Shown piece after piece: positions 14,761 to 28,118 of a stretch of DNA of 40,598 nt. Under the pieces are notes generated by a model. That model worked only from the letters and a program-made list of their open reading frames with translations, ran no database searches and was not told the DNA's origin. The position numbers and the translations under genes were made by a program. Numbering within the stretch: the stretch's first letter is position 1; every line of letters begins with the position of its first letter. Origin of the DNA: Salpingoeca rosetta (Eukaryota; Protista; Choanoflagellata); contig JAWQFM010000036.1 in NCBI GenBank assembly GCA_033442325.1, positions 20,575 to 61,172 on the forward strand, written 5' to 3'.

Positions 14761-17700
14761 ATGTCCGGCGGAGAGAAGAGAGCGAGGGAGGAGGTGGAGG
14801 CGTTGCTGGCGCAGACGAAGCTGACGGATCGAGTGAAGAATAAGATCAGGGCCATCGCCAACAACACGTGTGGGGACAATGTGGGGTGAGTGCAAAAGCA
14901 ACCAAAACGACGTGTTGCAACATGCATGCCTGCATTGGACACAAGGCCACTTCTTGTGGTTGTGCTTGTGCTTATTCTTCCCCCCCCCCTCTCTCTCTCT
15001 GCTTGGCTTGTCCTTGTGTTGCAATGAGCTTGGTGTGGCTTGCTGTTGGGTGTTCACGTGTGCGTGTCCTGTCCCCTCGCACCACCTGGACACATCAACA
15101 GAGAGTGTGTGTGCGTGTGTGTTTGTGGCAGGTTGTGACTGGCACCCTCATGGTTTTGCTCTGTGTATCCTCAGTCTTCTTGCTCATTTCATGACACACA
15201 CCATTTGAAATTACAGCTTGAATAATGATGGCCTCGGCGTCATTGGGGCGCGTGCGGTGGCCAAGGCGCTCAAGGACAACACCTGCCTCAAAACGCTCTT
15301 GTGCGTGGTGATGATGAATCTGCATCGTGTGACATGCATGGTTGATTGGGATGGCGGTGTTGCATGTTGCACCCCTTTCTCCTCCCCTGCTTGCGCATGT
15401 TTGGACGTGTGTTCACCGTCGCTCCCTGCGGTTCTTGTGTGTCTGCACAGCCTGCACAACAATTCCATCGGCGATGAGGGCGCCGTGGCGTTGGCGGAGA
15501 TGCTGAAGCACAACACGGCCCTCGAAGAACTCAAGTGAGTGTGGACACGCACACACACACACACATGTATGCTGCGTCACTGCCGTTGCACCTTATCACG
15601 TGCACATGTGTGGCTGATGGGGTGGGGTTCAACGACTGTGTTGCCACCCACAACAATCATCATCACGCACTCACTCACTCTTCCTCATCCATGTGGCATC
15701 ATCGCCCTTCGTGGCATTATACCATCTGGACAGCCTGCAAAGCAACTCCATCGGCGATGAGGGCGCTGTGGTGTTGGCGGAGATGCTGAAGCACAACACG
15801 GCCCTCGAACAGCTCTTGTGAGTTTGAACACACACGCATGCACGAAGGCACCCGCTTTGAGCATGTGTGCATGTGGTTGTGCACGTCTGCAGCAGGCGCG
15901 CTGGCTGTTTGCCACCCCATGTGCTCGCCGCCCCCATCCCTCCTGCTCACCACCGCGTATGCTGTCACTGACCTCCCACTCCTCACTCCTCTCTCTTGTG
16001 TGTACACAGCCTGATGAGCAACCGCATCGGTCCTGAGGGCGCTGCGGCGTTGGCGGAGATGCTGAAGCACAACACGACCCTCGAAGAACTCTAGTGAGTG
16101 TGCACACGCACACACACACATGTATGCTGCGTCACTGCCGTTGCACCTTATCACGTGCACATGTGCCCATGTGTGGATTGATGACTGTGTTGTCACCCAC
16201 AGCAATCATCATCACGCACGCACTCACTCTTCCTCATCCATGTGGCATCATCCCCCTGTGTGGCATTATACCATCTTGACAGCCTGAGTGAGAACTCCAT
16301 CGGTCCTGAGGGCGCTGTGGCGTTGGTGGAGATGCTGAAGCACAACACGACCCTCACATGGCTCGGGTGAGTGTGTACACGCACACATGCACACATGTAT
16401 GCTGCGTCACTGTCGTTGCACCTTATTACGTGCACATGTGCCCATGTGTGGATTGATGACTGTGTTGCCACCCACATCAATCATCACGCTCTTCCTCACC
16501 CATGTGGCATCATCCCTCTGCCTGGCACCATACCGTCTTGACAGCCTGGAACGCAACCGCGTCGGCGATGAGGGCGCTGTGGCGTTGGCGAAGGTGCTGA
16601 AGCACAACACGACCCTCGAAATACTCATGTGAGTGGAAGCTCCTCTTTGCAATGTGTGTCTTCAGGCGCTTCTTCTGCAGTACACATGTGCAGATCGAGG
16701 CACCGCAAGCCGCCCACGATGTCTGTGCGACATGCTTGTCCAACCAACAAATGCTTCCATCCTTCACCTGTGCCACAAGTGCTGCCACGTCTTGTGCAAT
16801 TTGCATTTTCCCCCTTCTCCCTTTGCTTCCGCCATTGTGACTTCAATGTCGTAGGACCTGATGTGCGAGCGAGTACACGTGCACGTGATCCATCTGCAAC
16901 CCACTTTCATCCATGACCCGTGTTGCTTGCCCACCCGTTCCCCCTGCTCTTCCAACATGCATTTCTTGCCACTTGCAGCTTGGATAACAACTCCATCACC
17001 CCGGTTGGCGGTGCGGCGCTGGGTGCCGCACTGGACGAAAACCGCACGCTGTCTCGGCTTGAGTACGTCAATTGCGTTGCGCCTGCCTCATGAACGCCTG
17101 TGTCCTGTTGTGGATTTGTGTGACCAATCGCCACTCTTTTGAGTGCACGCCACACTGCAGATCGAGGCACCGCAAGCCGCCCACGATGTCTGTGCGACCA
17201 TGCTGTCCAACCAACAAATGCTTCCATCCTTCACCTGTGCCACAAGTGGTGCCACGTCTGTGCAATTTGCATTTTCCCCCTTCTCCCTTTGCTTCCGCCA
17301 TTGTGACTTCAAATGTCGTAGGACCTGATGTGCGAGCGAGTACACGTGCACGTGATCCATCTGCAACCCACTTTCATCCATGACCCGTGTTGCTTGCCCA
17401 CCCGTTCCCCCTGCTCTTCCAACATGCATTTCTTGCCACTTGCAGCTTGGATAACAACTCCATCACCCCGGTTGGCGGTGCGGCGCTGGGTGCCGCACTG
17501 GACGAAAACCGCACGCTGTCTCGGCTTGAGTACGTCAATTGCGTTGCGCCTGCCTCATGAACGCCTGTGTCCTGTTGTGGATTTGTGTGACCAATCGCCA
17601 CTCTTTTGAGTGCACGCCACACTGTGTGTGTTCCTCTCTGCTTGCTTGCATTTCTCCACAACCCTAACCACCAACCCTCCTGACCCACACACCACACTTG

Positions 17701-19123
17701 CTGCTTGTTCCCAACCACACGCTACCACCACATGTCCTCGTTCAGCATCGAGGAGAACTCCACCGCCACCGCCCGCGCCTTTGGTGCCGCGCTGCCCGTC
17801 GACCGAGAACTCAACACAGACTGGTCAGTCAACGCGTGCTTCCACTCTAGTCGTTCGCTCCTTGCCTTCTCTCGACCCTTCTCCTCACACACACACACAC
17901 GCTGCATGATGCTTGCGTTTAATTTTGCGTGAGATCACAGGGGTGATGACCGTGAGGGCAACGCCGCCTTCGATGAAGCACGCAAGGAGAAGAAACGACG
18001 ACACCATGAGCAACTGTTTGCCGCCTGCAGGGATGGCGACGCTCCAGCTGTCACGTCCCTCATCGAACAGGACAATGCAGATGTCAACCAACATAATGAA
18101 CAGGTATGTGCATTGTGTGTGTTGTGCTTGTATGTGACGGCGCTCGCTCATGGTTGCACCGGCCGTGTGTTCGTTTCCAACAGATCCTCACCACACGTGC
18201 CATGCCCCTTGCTTGCCCCACCCAATAACAGGGCGACACGCCGCTGCACGTTGCCTGCAGGCACAACCAGCCCGCCGTCGTGGAGCTACTCCTGAAGAAG
18301 GGCGCAGACACTGCCGTCAAGAACAAGAAGGTGTGCTTCGCGTCGTGTTGCTGTTTCTGAAGACGTGACACAACTGCTTCTTTGCTTTGCGCTGTGCCCC
18401 CCCCCTCTCCCTGCTTCCCTCCTTCCTCAACTCATGCGTTTTACCTTTCCAACACACGCAGGGAGAGACGCCCTATGATGTGGCACAAGCCAGCGGTCAT
18501 ACTGCCATCACCAGCATCCAAGGGCTGAAGTCAGGCGGCAAACCCCAGCAACAACCACAGCAACAACAGCAGCCAAAACAAGAGCCACCTGCGCCCACTC
18601 CTGCCGCCGGACCGAAGCAAGAAGAACAAGCAGCGCAAGACGTGAGTTATCAGAAGAGTGCTTGCCAGCAACGCACAAGCAAATGCATCACGTCACCCAT
18701 ACCATTCCTTCATCACGCTCTCCCTGGTCTCGTATCAAGCATAATCATGATGTCTCACACAACCATCACCACCGCCGCGACCAGCACCACCATCAGCAGC
18801 AGCCCGAACAGGCGCGCAGGGAGCGTCTCCAGCAGCGCATGCGGGAGGTCATAGCACGCTTCAACGCGACCATGGCGGGCAGGGCCAAACTCATCTTCAT
18901 TGGTCAGGGGCGCGCCGGCAAGACTTCCACGTTCCACTCACTCATGGGTCACACCTTCAACAAGCATGAGCACTCCACGCATGGCGCCGCCTCAACCGAC
19001 CTCGCCGTCATTGTCGAATCAATGGACGTTCACGACTGGCAGGTGTGTGAGTGAAGCTGATGCGAGCATGTGATGTGTGCGACGCATGGGTGTGAAGAGA
19101 GGTGGTGGTTGACACGATCATCC

Positions 19124-19159
<36 letters not shown>

Positions 19160-19703
19160 GGAGCTGGATGCGGAGATCTCGGAGCTGATGCGCAGTCTCT
19201 GCGGCACGGCGCTGGCGCAGGAATCTGGCGTGGACTTGCAGATGAAGCAGGCGATGATGAAGGCGAAGGCGAACTTTGAGAGCCGCATCGCCCAACACCA
19301 TCAGCAACAGCGGCAGCAGGAATCTGATAAAACACCGAAAGCAGCGGCTGCCAAGCTGAAGCAAGGACAGTCACAGCAGTCAATGGAGACGCGGTCACGG
19401 CCATCATCCCGCACGTCGCCAGCGACTGTCCCAAAGCCCAGCAAGACGCCTCACATGTGTGCGTCTGCACCCAAGAAGCAGACCACCCTAAACCCTTCCA
19501 GCCAAAGTGATGCTGCTGCGCGTGACAACAGCACCACTGCCACAACCGGCATGTCTGCGGAGGAAATGGAGAAAGCGATCAAAGAGTTCAACGTGGACGC
19601 CGTCATGGGCGAGGGCAAAGCGCGCGTCACGTTCAAGGTGTTTGACCTGGGCGGCCAGTCCACCTTCTACATCTTCCACCCTTTCTTCCTCACCAAGTGA
19701 GCC

Positions 19704-19749
<46 letters not shown>

Positions 19750-22700
19750 GGCCTCCTCACTCACTCACCCCAATATATTCCAACCCCCCCCCCCACCACA
19801 CATACAACCCACACCAGGTACGCGGTGTACCTGCTGGTGTTCTCCATGGAGGACCTGTTGCACGAAGACGAGAGCCATCGGGCAGAGGCGTGGGAATTTA
19901 TGGAGCACTGGCTCTCCTCCCTCCACCTCCACGCCAAGGGCGCACCCGTCCTCATCGTGGGCACCTTCGCTGACAAGATCAACGAGAGGAAGCAGCACGA
20001 GAACATCTCACGCGACATCTACAGCCGCCTGCGCCACAACCCCGCTTTCCCTGGCGTCATCCACAACGACAAGCATGGCCTGTGGTTCTGGCCTGTCGAC
20101 AACACCAAGTCCATCAATGACCCCATCATCCAGGACCTGCGCCAGACCATCTCCTCCACAGCACTGGCGCAGGAGTACGTGAGCCAGGAGGTGGCGGTGC
20201 CGTACCTCCACCTCTACGACAAGCTCAACGCCATCGCCCGCGACGAGCAACGGCCACTGCTCACGTTTGATGAGGTGGTGCAGATTGCGCGCACGTGTGG
20301 GCTGCGCACACGTGAGGAGACGAAGGCCTGCCTCCAATTCCTCCACCTGTACTCGATGGTGCTGTACTACGACCACGTGCCAGGCATGGAGGATTTCGTG
20401 ATCCTGAGCCCGCAGTGGGCGGTGGATACAATGACCCGCGTCATCCGTAACTTTGACCTGCACCACGACGTGCGTGATGGTGCGGCGAGGGCCGTTGGCG
20501 CGCAGCTGTGGGACGACCTCGTTGACCGCGGCATCCTGCACCGCCGTCTACTTGATGTGCTGTGGAGGGACTTGGAAGGTGGCATGGTTGAGCCCTTTCT
20601 CCAACTCATGATGGAGTACGGGTTGTGTATCCAGTACACAGCGCCAATGGTGCTGCTGTCCAGCCACCAACAGCAGCAACACCACCAGTACCTCGTCCCA
20701 GCCATCCTGCCGATGACGCTGGAGGATGAACAGGCGTCCTCGTCGGTCACGCTGAGCACGGCAGCAGCACAGCAGGCCAATCCATACGCTGGATATGAAG
20801 AGAAGACAGCCTACGTCGCCTTCAGCCTGAGAGAGTTCAAGAGGGGTGTAAGCGCCAAGATTGCAGACACGCAGCAAGCCTCTTTCCTGCCAGAGGGCCT
20901 GTTCCCGATGGTTCTGGCACGCGTGATGGCACACATGCAACACGGTGCAACGGAACCGCCCATGTTGAGCCGCACAGACGCCGTGATCTTCATGGATGCT
21001 GCTGAGATCGAGATGCAGCTCGTGCCGGCTGTTGGCGGCATCAAGATCAAGGTCATGACTGCACGTCCTCGCACGCTGCTGCACATGCTGTACGACACCA
21101 TCACAACAGCTGTCACGCAGCGCTACCCCGAGCTCAAGGCCACGTTGCTGCTGCCATTCAGTGACACGAGACTGCTGTTCTTCGAGGACGTGCACACCCA
21201 CCACATGACCCCTTACCCTAAAGGGCTTGAGAGCCTAAGGAGCACGGCAGCAGCACAGCAGCTCAATCCATACGCTGGATATGAAGAGAAGACAGCCTAC
21301 GTCGCCTTCAGCCTGAGAGAGTTCAAGAGGGGTGTAAGCGCCAAGATTGCAGACACGCAGCAAGCCTCTTTCCTACCAGAGGGCCTGTTCCCGATGGTTC
21401 TGGCACGCGTGATGGCACACATGCAACACGGTGCAACGGAACCGCCCATGTTGAGCCGCACAGACGCCGTGATCTTCATGGATGCTGCTGAGATCGAGAT
21501 GCAGCTCGTGCCGGCTGTTGGCGGCATCAAGATCAAGGTCATGACTGCACGTCCTCGCACGCTGCTGCACATGCTGTACGACACCATCACAACAGCTGTC
21601 ACGCAGCGCTACCCCGAGCTCAAGGCCACGTTGCTGCTGCCATTCAGTGACACGAGACTGCTGTTCTTCGAGGACGTGCACACCCACCACATGAACAAGA
21701 AAGCGCTTCGCGTTGGCCGCTCACAGCTGCTGTCACCAGGAGATCTGGTCGCCAAATATGGACCACTCTTGCCAGTTATGGGTCAGCAGGACAAATACGA
21801 TGCCTTCATCAGCTACAGGTGGGAATGTGTGAATGTGTGTGTGTGCATGTGTGTACATTGCGAACTGGGTGTCTTTCCTTCCCTCTCTCTCTCTCTCTCT
21901 TCCTTTCTCATCCCGGCATTCACCACCACGTCACAGGCAACGCGGCAACCGGGGTTTGGTGATGACCCTTCACCCAAGGTTGGAACAGCACGGACTGGTG
22001 ACCTTTGTGGACACCAACAACTTGGAGACAGGCGTCAACTTCAAGCATGCGTGCATGACAGCCCTGCACAACAGTGCTGTCGCCTGCCCCGTCGTCTCTG
22101 TCGGTGCCATCCATCAGATGCGCTCGCTCGGCCACAGTGACACGTGCGATAACGTGCTGTTGGAGTGGATGGCCATGCTGGAGTTGCAGCAGCTTGCTCG
22201 CCAGCACCAGGACCAGATCCGCCTTCGCCGCATCGTCCCGCTCTTCGTTGGCAGTGGCTGGCACGACAGCAACCACCATGTTATGAGCGCGGCGGAAGTG
22301 AGCGAGTACGACTCGTTTGACCGCCTGAAGCGGCTGGCAACGAAGCTGCCGGATGTTGTGAGCAAGAACACGACGTCAGCGCTGGACCAGTACTTTTCAC
22401 AGGTGCTGCGCCTGCCACCCCCACAGCAGCACAAGAGCGTGCGTGAAGTGGTGCTGTCGCTATTTGACGTTGATGCGGTGATTGCGGTGGATGCCGGCGT
22501 GGACCGCACGTCGCAGCTGCGCGAAATTGCAGAAAAGGTGCGCCAGGTTGTCGTCTCTGCCAGGAGCGAGGAGCAAGCAGCTCAGGAGCCAGCAGCTGCA
22601 CGTCGTTCCACGCAGGTATGGTTTTGTGTGTCTGCAGATATGCAAGCGTGCGCTTCTCTCTTCCACTTGGCACGCGTGCTATGTCTCACTCAACCCCTCT

Positions 22701-23018
22701 TTCCCATCTGTCCTGCAGTCATCTTCCTCGGTCTCCACCGCTACCACTCCTGTTACACCACCACCTGCCTCCTCATCGTCCTCCTCATCTTCGCCATTTG
22801 ATCCCGAGTTACTTGAATGGCTCAATCGCCACTCGCTGCTGCCGCACGTCGAGTCCGCCCTGGTTGAGCACGCTATCGACGATCTTCACGTGCTGGTGGC
22901 GCTCGTTCAAATGGGGGAGCTGACCATGCAGATCCTCAAGGCATCTGGTGTGCCAATGGGTGCTGCCTTCAAGCTGATTCGGGAGGCAAAGAAGTGCGAC
23001 GTGGACAGTTCTGTGTAG
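14761..23018 (+). CDS. ROCO-family LRR-ankyrin-Roc GTPase-COR-TIR-SAM protein (~1696 aa, 18 exons)
   Basis: Exons: 14761-14885, 15217-15300, 15451-15534, 15734-15817, 16010-16093, 16283-16366, 16545-16628, 16979-17062, 17446-17529, 17746-17823, 17941-18103, 18232-18330, 18462-18641, ~18785-19042, 19161-19696, 19818-21818, 21937-22615, 22719-23018. All are GT-AG and sum to 5091 nt, open to TAG. Motifs: RNI/NLRC3-type LRRs (LxxNxIGDEGAxALAEMLKHNTxLxxL); ankyrin GDTPLHVAC...LLLKKGAD; Roc G1 GQGRAGKT, G2 STHG, G3 DLGGQ, G4 VGTFAD; COR (LQFLHLYSMVLYY..VILSPQW, YLVPAILP, FLPEGLF); TIR YDAFISYR...TFVD...LETG...DNVLLEW; SAM WLNRHSL...GVPMGAAFKLI. Confidence 0.92.
15217..17529 (+). repeat. Array of eight 84-nt LRR exons (28 aa each, all phase 2), several with homologous introns
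   Basis: Each exon is exactly 84 nt and starts with C after AG. The introns following the exons at 15451, 16010 and 16283 share long near-identical sequence (gtgagtgtg..catgtatgctgcgtcactg.cgttgcacctta..acgtgcacatgtg...catgtggcatcatc...gacag). Confidence 0.92.
16689..17624 (+). repeat. ~467-bp tandem duplication containing an identical LRR exon
   Basis: 16689-17155 is repeated at 17156-17624. Exons 16979-17062 and 17446-17529 are identical, and the few differences lie in the first ~170 bp of the unit. Confidence 0.92.
20754..21694 (+). repeat. In-frame 455-bp tandem duplication within the large COR exon, separated by a 31-nt unique filler
   Basis: 20754-21208 matches 21240-21694 (offset 486 nt = 162 codons) with about 3 substitutions. 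The filler at 21209-21239 is ccccttaccctaaagggcttgagagcctaag. Confidence 0.93.
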
Positions 23019-24260: not shown

Positions 24261-24273
24261 GTCATCATCATCA
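24199..24273 (-). repeat. (TGA)n trinucleotide microsatellite in frame with, and starting at, the stop codon of the PH-PARP-like gene
   Basis: The plus strand reads (tca)n. On the minus strand this is 25 codons after ...EESAA: 24 TGA and one CGA. Confidence 0.9.
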
Positions 24274-24572
24274 CGCAGCAGACTCCTCGTCCACTGTTTC
24301 CAACCCGGGATCGGTGTCACCGCCGTTCATGTGTTGTTGCGTTAAGCTGTCGATGCACGCACGAAGCGCAACGTTCACCGTCTCCAGCTTGTCTGACGCG
24401 ATGGATCTCGCCTTGCCGGATGCACTGGCGTCTTGCATCAGCTTCTCCACGCAAGACGCAAGATGCTTCTGCAGCTCGCCGAACTGCGCGTGCATGTCCG
24501 ACACGCTTGCCTTTGACATGGTTGCCCTACAGGAGTGTGCATGTGCGTGCGTGTGTGTGTGTGTATGAGTGC

Positions 24573-24665
<93 letters not shown>

Positions 24666-25622
24666 CGTGTGTGTGTGTATGAGTGTGTGCGTGCGTGTGT
24701 GTGAGCAAGGATATTCAACAATTAGCGAGCACGCAGTCAAGCCACTGCAGCAACCCGCTCCTTTCGCCCACCACGACAACCATCAACGAGCAACACACCT
24801 GCGTTGGATGCTGTGCATTTGTATTTTGTAGATCCGGAACGCTTTCCTGGTCAGTGGCAGTGATCCTGTCCAAAAGACAATCGAAGTGGAGGAAGAGGCG
24901 CGTGTGTGTGCACGTGCGTGTATTTGCGTGAGTGAGTATTTGAGTGTGCATGTATTTGTGAGAGTTTTGTTTGTTTGTGTGTTCATGTGAGTGTGTGCGT
25001 GTTCTTCTTCTCTCGAATGTCTCATGAAATGCGTTGACAGGGTCAACACCATTCCAAGCCCCTCCTCCTCCTCCTCCTCCTCCTCCTACCACCACCGTAC
25101 CCTGTGCGAGCCTGGCCTGGTCGTCGATGAGAATGCTCTGCTCAATCTCGGGCCAGATGCGCGGCACCTGCGCCAGACTCCGCAGGTACTCTCCGTCCTT
25201 CGCATCCTCCACAAACGGCTGCACGTCCATCGTGGCCATATGGAAGGTGGTGGAAGGTGGTGGAAGGTGGTGGAAGGTGAATTGGCGTGCAGAGCGACAG
25301 CAAAACAGGCGACATGCGTAGCGGCGTCCTTGTACACACACCCCCCCCACCACACACACACACACACACACACGCACGCACACACACACACAACACAGCA
25401 CACACACACACACACACATGCACAACACAAGACAACACGGCACAGCGCACGTTTGGGAGCGGGAGGCGGAGGCGGTACGAGATGGAGCAGACGGGGAGAA
25501 TCTGCTGCGATTCGTACACAGCAACCTGAGGTGCGTGATTATGATTGTGATTGTGTTTGTTCGTGGGTGTTCGTGGGCGGGTGATGTTCGCACGTGATCA
25601 TGTTTGTTCGTGGTTGATGTTC

Positions 25623-25668
<46 letters not shown>

Positions 25669-26967
25669 GTGTGTGTGTGTGTATTTGGGTGTGAGAAGTC
25701 GTGCCATGGCTCAAGTTTGAACATGCAGGTGACTCAGCACAACACACAACCACAACCACAAACACACTCGAAAGCAACCCGTAACCCCCATCCACCCCCA
25801 AAGCACCACCCCCCTGCTTGCCCCCCCCCCACTCCGCTTATCGCGGGTGTGTACCTGCTTTAGCTTTGGCCCTGCTGCGCTGTGGCAGCCGACGGGTGGG
25901 GAGGTGTTCTGTGGATGTGCGAGGTCGATGTTTGGCATCATGATGGGGTCCTGACGCGTCACTTGATCGTCCAGATACAGCGACTCACGCACCCCAGTCT
26001 GGTTCATAGTGATGGCGGTGACGGACGGTTAGGTGGTGGTGGTGGTGGTGGGATGGTGAGTGATGGTGGGAATGATGCTGCTGCTGCTGCTGCTCGTGCA
26101 ATCGCACAGCGGTGGTTTGTGATGTTCACACACACACACACATGCACACACACACCTGGCCAAGCATGACGAGGACAGCAACGACGCGGCGCGTGCCGCT
26201 GGCGTCGGGCGGTGTGTAGTGCGACACAATCTTTCCATCAGGGAAGCAGTAGTACGCATCGCCAAGTGGGGAGGGCAGGCCACTGAACGCGCTCGTCTGG
26301 GGTCCCGCCTCAAGCAAGTGGTCGAGGTCGTGGCAGGGGTGGAACAGAACACGACACGTTGGCGGATAGCCGTGTGTCCGCTCCCACTTCTGGTACTGTT
26401 TGTTTGGTAATGATGATCATGGTGGTTTGGTGGTGATGTGTGGTGGTGCGTGGTGGCAACGTGTGAGAGGGGTGACAGAATGATAAGGACACAGTAATAA
26501 GAAGTAATGTGACACCGCCAGCCACCAGTGTCACACACGCGCGCAAAACGTACGCGTACACACACGCACACACACACACACTCTCTCTCTCACACACACT
26601 CACACACATACACACGCACACACACACACAAACACACACACAGTAGGCGCACGCACATCAGTCAATCATACCTTGGCCACGAAATCCCTAACGGCAGCCT
26701 CACGCATGCACAGGGTAGCCGTGAGGTTGAGGAGGAGATCAGAGCGGAAGCAGGCAGCAAAGCTTGCGGCCACAGCATCCTCCACCATCTCCACAGCATC
26801 GATTTCGCCGCCGGAACAGAGATCCAGCAGCTGGGAAACGCTCTCGGCCTCAGCCGTCGTCGTGTTGCGACGCGAACTCCGCTCCTCTGCAACGTGGTAC
26901 GGTCGTGTCATGGTGAGAAAGTGTGTGTGTGTGTGTGTGTTTGCATGTGTGTGTGTGTGTGTGTTTG

Positions 26968-27056
<89 letters not shown>

Positions 27057-27763
27057 CTGCCGTGAAGAAGTCGAGACGAGAAGAGGCTTCGAGATCCCCT
27101 CGCCTGTGGCGTCGTTTACCACCCCCCCACACACACACATATGCAGCACCCCATGCTTTCCATCCCTTTGCCTCCAGCAACAACAATGCACCTGGCTTGT
27201 CTGCGTCGATGGTGACTGGGTTGACACCGCCAGTCTGCTGTGCGAGTGCAGTCCACTGCTCCCTGATGGCACCGAGCACGCGCTGCCCGTCCTGCGCCGT
27301 CGAGAAGAACATGAAGAACGTGCGGTGCGGCACAACCTGCGGGCGGTGGGCACGTGTTTGGAACAGAGTTGCGAGGTTGTTGTGATAGTGATACACGTTG
27401 AGTGGTGAGATGTGAGCTGTGGGAGTCATGTGGTCATGCATGTTGAAGTGTGAGCTGTTGTGAGCTGTTTCGTCATCGTGCGTGTGTGTTGGACTCACGA
27501 TGGCCATGGGGTAGTTGCTCTTGCTGAGTTGGGGCCAGTTGGGCGCCGTGTTGGGCCACTTGCGGCTCTTGTTCAGGCACTTTCTTCTGCCGGCAACAAC
27601 TTGCACTGTGGATTGGGAGGGGGGAGGTGATAAGGCGTGGGTTTGGGAATGCACGAGCACCCAGTGGTTTGGATGCATATGCACGTGCAGCTTATGGGGG
27701 GGGGGGTGTTGAACACATGCACGCAGCGTGAAACGCACACACACACACACACAGCACATCATA

Positions 27764-27827
<64 letters not shown>

Positions 27828-28118
27828 CACATCATATCACACACACAACATCATTTCATACACACACAGCATCACACACTCACGGAGGGAGCTGAGTTGG
27901 ATGACGCCCTTGGGCGGATACGAGTCCTCGTCCTCATGATAGGCGATGATGTCGCGGTTAACAACGAGCCAGCGCCGCTTCCAGAGCTTGAGCATGCCGC
28001 CTTGCTTCCACATGTATGCGCTCACGGGCGCAGCGCTTGAGCCGGCGCCATTGCTTGTGGCTGACAGAGGCGCAGCGGTGGAGGACGACGACTTGCGAGG
28101 CGACTTGAACCGTGACAT
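24271..28118 (-). CDS. PH-domain protein fused to a divergent PARP/ADP-ribosyltransferase-like domain and a C-terminal helical region (~533 aa, 10 exons)
   Basis: Exons: 28118-27884, 27605-27499, 27336-27192, 26886-26672, 26395-26156, 25998-25855, 25525-25451, 25218-25101, 24865-24799, 24526-24271. All are GT-AG with consistent phases, totalling 1602 nt. PH: SAYMWKQGGMLKLWKRRWLVV..IIAYHEDE..PKGVIQL...HRTFFMF. PARP-like motifs in order: RVLFHPC, LGDAYYCFPDGKIVSHY, RRVVAVLVMLG, PPVGCHSAAG, QVAVYESQQILPVCSISY. Confidence 0.8.

Follow-up and report, generated by a model that had tools for sequence, protein, structure and literature searches.

The 40,598-nucleotide stretch of the choanoflagellate Salpingoeca rosetta analysed here (the window; contig JAWQFM010000036.1 of assembly GCA_033442325.1, positions 20,575 to 61,172 of the forward strand) encodes PTSG_13103 (P0153), a protein of 1445 amino acids (aa) annotated as hypothetical. 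It consists, in this order, of RNI-type leucine-rich repeats (LRRs), ankyrin (Ank) repeats, a Roc GTPase, COR-A/COR-B, a TIR domain, and a SAM-like domain. Our analysis suggests that PTSG_13103 is a cytosolic ROCO-type protein whose TIR domain most likely processes NAD+ by means of the glutamate E1196, and that its main product would be canonical cyclic ADP-ribose (cADPR), made as a signal rather than in the course of a bulk depletion of NAD+. The gene itself was already annotated, and a preprint of 2026 (bioRxiv 10.64898/2026.04.20.719644) describes a sister TIR as active.

That sister is the TIR domain of S. rosetta F2UB80, which is listed as active and as a producer of cADPR in E. coli; neither a depletion of NAD+ nor 2' or 3' cADPR isomers are recorded for it (Table S4, row 33, of bioRxiv 10.64898/2026.04.20.719644). 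The same study names S. rosetta among the non-metazoan cADPR producers, and its structure-based call of the catalytic residue of F2UB80 is E1118, the counterpart of E1196. Protein P0154 (PTSG_12359, F2UB80) holds the exact tested construct at residues 1034-1255, with E at position 1118. Both proteins are encoded in the same genome by members of one LRR-Ank-Roc-COR-TIR-SAM gene family, and they agree fully in the FISYR, BB-loop, and DNVLLEW motifs. They differ in that F2UB80 lies at another locus, carries 27 substitutions in its TIR, and is compared here with a PTSG_13103 that, in this assembly, shows an in-frame tandem duplication in COR-B. Their TIR domains are identical at 195 of 222 positions (88%). 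All columns conserved to at least 70% in the family are the same in both, and all 27 differences fall into columns conserved to 48% or less. Because of this degree of identity, and because the differences are confined to variable columns, the TIR of PTSG_13103 is very probably an active enzyme.

Besides these two, further S. rosetta proteins carry this type of TIR. With the paralogue P0001 as query, a word search restricted to lengths of 832-2648 aa yields at least 26 S. rosetta proteins that have it, and FISYR, the BB loop, and DNVLLEW are unaltered in 25 of the 27 S. rosetta proteins that were aligned. The exceptions are P0173, in which the TIR alignment breaks at the motifs, and P0172 (PTSG_12997, 2282 aa), in which the motif reads DNVLLQW (Glu to Gln), the BB loop is deleted, and a PARP catalytic domain (Pfam PF00644) is present. 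In P0002 (PTSG_11903, 1728 aa), DNVLLEW is kept and a long extension behind the TIR looks PARP-like by eye only; its precomputed Pfam list contains no PARP family, and no dedicated PARP scan was made.

E1196, the candidate catalytic Glu, is encoded by the GAG codon at 22163-22165 (+ strand) and would be equivalent to E642 of SARM1 and E1118 of the tested paralogue. An exhaustive HMMER search among 1.84 billion representative sequences (<50% identity) identified 182 relatives of the TIR at E ≤1e-3. The best 150 of the 182 were fetched, and a local jackhmmer run aligned 157 domain instances from 149 of these. Column counts in the 157 instances define a signature of the family, D-N-V-L-L-E-W, where helix C begins (22148..22168, + strand), with D in 149 of them, N in 124, L in 149, E in 152, and W in 140. 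In a curated alignment of 89 family sequences (A1), only two columns are invariant, that of the Glu and that of one Pro. The Ser, Tyr, and Arg of strand A (S1118-Y1119-R1120) are kept at 93-99% in the family, and conservation reaches 98% for D1145, 96% for G1152 of the BB loop, and 70% for F1155. The BB-loop region itself, DTNNLETGVNF, is located at 22010..22042 (+ strand) by profile alignment.

With the A1 profile as query against all PDB sequences, the human SARM1 TIR ranks first (E 1.7e-11, 47.6 bits) and is aligned over the whole domain. D-n-v-L-l-E-W is placed on D-W-V-H-K-E-I of SARM1, so that the Glu falls on E642, a numbering that was checked against the sequence of the E642Q control in Table S4 of bioRxiv 10.64898/2026.04.20.719644. 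In the same alignment, S1118-Y1119-R1120 fall on S567-Y568-R569 of SARM1, D1145 on D594, G1152 on G601, and F1155 on F603, and the equivalent of W638 is an Asn. Both the BB-loop Gly (G601) and the acidic residue following strand B (D594) are functionally important in SARM1, for which the titles of PDB mutant entries give additional support. In the structural model of the TIR, E1196 is part of the helix formed by model residues 84-99, a region within a model of pLDDT 94, and sits at the start of helix C. These data support the assignment of E1196 to the position equivalent to SARM1 E642. A first-pass annotation, made by a model from the letters of the window, had quoted a TIR peptide that is indeed present, save for one dropped residue (LETGVNF, not LETG-NF), and had proposed both that the GAG corresponds to E642 and that the catalytic Glu is retained; on these last two points our analysis agrees with it.

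The domain encoded at 21793-22585 is a genuine TIR domain. On the full P0153, Pfam TIR_2 (PF13676) matches residues 1116-1226 with 31.9 bits (E 2.2e-7; gathering score 28). Without strand A, which belongs to the previous exon, the TIR exon reaches 27.6 bits. PF01582, the model for TLR- and plant-type TIRs, reaches 17.9 bits on P0153, which is under its cut-off. An AlphaFold2 (AF2) model of the TIR (m7235a321a542), built from the 89-sequence family alignment, has a mean pLDDT (per-residue confidence) of 94.2 and a pTM (predicted template modelling score) of 0.92 and displays the expected beta-alpha order of a flavodoxin-like alpha/beta fold with five parallel strands, with strands at model residues 5-10, 58-65, 114-116, and 193-195 and a short bridge at 34-35. 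Model residues 193-228 form strand E and helix E, and therefore the TIR reaches to about 22585, beyond the end at 22260 given in the first-pass annotation. According to the model, the helix-D region is enlarged, so that strands D and E lie about 75 residues apart. In structural comparison with VIA-align, over 50 TIR entries match the model at Z values of 12-16, among them RUN1 (Z 15.8, root-mean-square deviation (rmsd) 3.4 Å, 165 residues aligned, 16% identity), the human SARM1 TIR (Z 14.4, rmsd 2.3 Å, 140/140 residues, 24% identity), AbTir (Z 13.5), and MyD88 (Z 13.1).

Searches with single sequences were less informative. phmmer with the TIR exon against the PDB retrieved chance matches only (P450, SepL) and no TIR, and SARM1 was not reached even at E up to 10. 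A word-index protein search with the 226-aa TIR exon returned 898 candidates, none of them significant, within a length window of 124-395 aa that leaves out full-length kin. NCBIfam contained no match to the TIR, and PADLOC found a weak N-terminal match only, to an Argonaute-associated TIR model (E 2e-4). A feature search of the ESM Atlas led to generic TIR_2 clusters at 0.93, which supports a TIR and is silent on its subtype.

The first-pass annotation had called this TIR SARM1-like, and this description stands in part. SARM1 leads the solved structures in the profile search, shows the highest identity (24%), and superimposes with an rmsd of 2.3 Å; in human SARM1 (PDB 6O0Q, 6O0U, and others), the catalytic Glu, the SYR motif, D594, G601, and F603 all have aligned counterparts, and a SAM-fold domain lies beside the TIR, as in PTSG_13103. 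SARM1, the TIR-1 protein of C. elegans, and Cat1, a weak match, are the few solved structures that the A1 profile aligns over helix C and beyond. On the other side, plant TIRs rank first for the TIR model by Foldseek and by VIA-align Z, with 15.8 against 14.4 for SARM1. C. elegans TIR-1, although a SARM1 orthologue, obtains 32.8 bits with the A1 profile, less than the plant proteins Roq1 (39.7) and L6 (37.9). In addition, W638 is replaced by Asn, and the helix-D region of PTSG_13103 is about 75 residues longer than that of human SARM1. PTSG_13103 lacks the ARM-SAM-SAM-TIR architecture that characterizes the SARM1 orthologue group and is instead organized as LRR-Ank-Roc-COR-TIR-SAM. SARM1 does not seem to be the nearest relative of the TIR either, as 149 of the best 150 out of 182 relatives gave instances of the DNVLLEW type. 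Choanoflagellates carry separate, bona fide SARM1 homologues (PMC6040629), and in a TIR atlas SARM1 belongs to 'Clade 8' together with a few choanoflagellate sequences (PMC13142454); the supplementary data searched contain no entry for Salpingoeca, PTSG, or F2UB80. The TIR of PTSG_13103 is therefore most accurately labelled a catalytic-type TIR of a separate, Roc-COR-linked protist subfamily, and not a SARM1 orthologue.

The plant TIRs of RUN1, RPV1, L6, RPP1, and Roq1 resemble the TIR of PTSG_13103 in having the highest Z values (15-15.8), an enlarged helix-D region, and the catalytic Glu in helix C, and in serving as the effector part at one end of an LRR receptor that is controlled by a nucleotide switch. 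However, identities amount to 14-18% only, and the A1 profile aligns with no more than the N-terminal half of the plant domains. Whereas plant receptors employ an NB-ARC switch and an N-terminal TIR, PTSG_13103 combines a Roc-COR switch with a C-terminal TIR. TIRs from Guillardia theta (L1IYH1) and Aphanomyces, both included in bioRxiv 10.64898/2026.04.20.719644, are similar in size (about 225 aa) and in the type of helix C (DHVLMEW and DNLLLEY, respectively), although the two organisms belong to other eukaryotic supergroups. The TIR of Guillardia is cADPR-active like F2UB80 but also depleted NAD+ overnight, and the Aphanomyces construct is not flagged as active.

PTSG_13103 is a ROCO protein, in which a Roc GTPase is followed by COR. 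On P0153, Pfam detects Roc with 61.1 bits and COR-A with 66.8 bits, and COR-B is detected with 47.8 bits on the open reading frame (ORF) of the window. Behind a Ser/Thr/Pro-rich linker, the protein ends in a domain of five helices (P0153 residues ~1375-1438; 22803..22994, + strand), for which AF2 gives a pLDDT of 91.3 over the C-terminal ~70 residues. In a VIA search of 48,161 chains with this domain, nearly all of the top 40 matches are SAM domains, with p73 (Z 8.1), EphA2 (7.7), tankyrase (7.0), and the SAM of SARM1 (6.9) among them. The SAM matches range from Z 8.1 to 5 with an rmsd of about 2-3 Å over 60-68 residues, Z values that are modest for a small helical domain. A Pfam scan of the last exon revealed no family, SAM included, at E up to 1, a profile of the C-terminal domain (A2) matched nothing in the PDB, and Foldseek returned weak, non-significant E-values. 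With moderate confidence, the C-terminal domain is predicted to adopt a SAM fold.

The combination of domains seems to be a trait of the family. Roc and/or COR were encountered upstream of the TIR in all nine long family members scanned, and one of the nine is organized as Ank-Roc-COR-TIR-SAM_1 with a SAM that is significant in Pfam. DNVLLEW-type TIRs are usually fused to the C-terminal side of Roc-COR. The named members derive from S. rosetta, S. infusionum, Hartaetosiga balthica, the chrysophyte Epipyxis, MMETSP transcriptomes, and environmental eukaryotic contigs. Associations of TIR with Ank in choanoflagellates were already noted in 2018 (PMC6040629).

From these features a working model may be drawn. 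The LRR/Ank part would sense a cue, upon which the state of the Roc-COR GTPase would change, and the GTP state may gate the activity of the TIR. As in other TIR enzymes, assembly of TIR with TIR would probably be required for activity. The C-terminal SAM-fold domain, together with dimerization by Roc-COR, might drive oligomerization, such that the TIRs form composite active sites. E1196-dependent cyclization of NAD+ would then provide cADPR as a second messenger.

How NAD+ would be processed is where the readings part. That PTSG_13103 is an executioner of the SARM1 type, whose activated TIR would mainly hydrolyse NAD+ to ADP-ribose (ADPR) plus nicotinamide and bring about the death or arrest of the cell, in the manner of SARM1 and numerous bacterial TIR systems, is unlikely. 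In its favour, SARM1 is the best whole-domain profile match among solved structures and has the top identity over 140 of 140 residues, a SAM-fold domain adjoins the TIR in both proteins, and the Guillardia member with DHVLMEW depleted NAD+ after overnight expression (bioRxiv 10.64898/2026.04.20.719644). But NAD+ depletion and several isomers are recorded for the SARM1 control, whereas for the paralogue F2UB80, at 88% identity, the list gives cADPR alone and has no entry for NAD+ depletion, and most of the TIRs tested in that study left NAD+ undepleted. The different architecture and the Asn at the place of W638 also speak against an executioner. A second enzymatic possibility, namely that the TIR performs chemistry known from plants, with 2'cADPR or 3'cADPR, pRib-AMP/ADP-type products, or a 2',3'-cyclic nucleotide monophosphate (2',3'-cNMP) synthetase activity on nucleic acids, is very improbable. 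RUN1, RPV1, and RPP1 are the top structural matches (158-171 residues aligned) because of the enlarged helix-D region common to both. However, the low identity and a profile match limited to the N-terminal half speak against it, and the paralogue produced canonical cADPR with neither the 2' nor the 3' isomer in Table S4 (bioRxiv 10.64898/2026.04.20.719644).

Equally improbable is a non-catalytic scaffold of the TLR/MyD88 type that would recruit partners by TIR-TIR contacts only. The TIRs of MyD88, MAL, and IL-18R-beta do align with the model (Z 12-13), and retention of the Glu does not guarantee activity. However, the Glu and its neighbouring motif are invariant across a family whose members share <50% identity, the F2UB80 paralogue is active, and PF01582 stays under its cut-off. 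The lone S. rosetta paralogue with a change from E to Q has also lost the BB loop and looks like an exception. The proposal in the first-pass annotation that the domain is an enzyme rather than a scaffold is hence very likely right. Of the two activities it had left open, NAD+ hydrolysis or formation of a cADPR isomer, a cADPR product is indicated through the paralogue, and NAD+ depletion in the manner of SARM1 is not.

Some points weigh against a NAD+-processing, cADPR-forming PTSG_13103 nevertheless. In some TIRs that retain the Glu, this residue points out of the pocket and the domain is inactive (bioRxiv 10.64898/2026.04.20.719644). The activity of F2UB80 was obtained with the isolated TIR over-expressed in E. 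coli and would hence bear on native PTSG_13103 in an indirect way. We infer the roles of the SAM-fold domain and of Roc-COR in the activation of PTSG_13103 from the presence of these domains. Finally, the depth of transcript reads over the core of the TIR is low (0-9x), and part of these reads stem from paralogues.

The gene for PTSG_13103 extends over several exons from 14761 to 23018 on the + strand, as delimited by tblastn of P0153 on the window and by the Pfam domains of P0153. The eukaryotic DNA of the window contains short GT..AG introns and numerous (TG)n tracts. Strand A of the TIR, KYDAFISY, and the first two bases of the following Arg codon are located at the end of an upstream exon (21793..21818, + strand), as judged from the sequence and the profile alignment. 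This Arg codon is split as AG/G by an intron of 118 nucleotides (21819..21936, + strand; GT..AG) that lies inside the TIR domain and contains (TG)n and (CT)n simple repeats. The frame is resumed at 21937 with QRGNRGLVMTLHPRLEQHGLVTFVDTNNLETGVNF, and P0153 reads ISYRQRGN across this junction. The main TIR exon part, which comprises helices A to E (P0153 residues 1120-1336), is situated at 21937..22585 (+ strand) according to the AF2 model and the VIA alignment. A second GT..AG intron, of 103 nucleotides (22616..22718, + strand), separates the TIR exon from the last exon, and the stop codon of the gene model is at 23016-23018 (+ strand). The spliced model from the TIR to the stop is 100% identical to P0153 over 366 aa. 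Continuous long ORFs at 21833-22801 and 19507-22140 were rejected as artefacts of reading through the introns of a eukaryotic gene.

Raw reads of two stranded RNA sequencing (RNA-seq) runs were matched at ≥98% identity. The joint from 21818 to 21937 occurs in 9 and 22 reads of the two runs, respectively, and the joint from 22615 to 22719 in 1 and 20. Reads span the GAG codon of E1196 and show no variant. PTSG_13103 is transcribed and spliced, and both introns are confirmed by RNA reads. At 21966 and at 22362, many of the reads cease to match and continue with a different sequence. Such loose read ends are the pattern that closely related, expressed paralogues would produce, and statements on the expression of a single paralogue need care with unique mapping.

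Within the gene, two places of the window match P0153 residues ~927-1122 (COR-B up to where the TIR begins), namely 19813-21318 and 21241-21867. The window thus carries a tandem duplication of about 160 codons that keeps the frame, with repeat units at ~20754-21240 and 21241-21694, and that has no counterpart in the 1445-aa protein as annotated. This duplication could be a real difference of allele or assembly, or an artefact of assembly, and the matched RNA reads are compatible with either. Further upstream, between 15200 and 17600, RNI-type LRR units of about 28 residues are encoded by one small exon each, in near-identical repeated exon-intron cassettes, two of which (16861-17142 and 17328-17609) give identical ORFs of 93 aa. 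The annotated protein has fewer LRR units than the window appears to hold. Downstream of the TIR gene, the next gene (24271-28118) was read in the first-pass annotation as encoding a PH-PARP-like protein. Its position beside a TIR gene may be of note, since the TIR paralogue P0172 has a PARP catalytic domain of its own.

PTSG_13103 adds one locus to a family that was already shown to be enzymatic, and the specific claim for its TIR is confirmatory. Its broader interest lies in the consistent coupling of this type of TIR to Roc-COR, and often to SAM, in choanoflagellates, the chrysophyte Epipyxis, and uncultured eukaryotes. Such coupling, together with the near-perfect conservation of the motifs in at least 25 S. 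rosetta paralogues, suggests GTPase-gated TIR signalling in the unicellular relatives of animals, a system that is tractable by S. rosetta genetics and bears on how TIR immunity was wired before animals. More speculatively, the DNVLLEW TIR may be the dedicated output of widespread protist ROCO receptors, in which Roc-COR, and not NB-ARC or NACHT, would gate a SAM-assisted assembly and cADPR signalling, the at least 26 S. rosetta paralogues being equipped with variable LRR/Ank sensors. If this tentative idea is true, the closest relatives of animals would possess an innate immune repertoire that resembles NLRs but relies on a third type of nucleotide switch.

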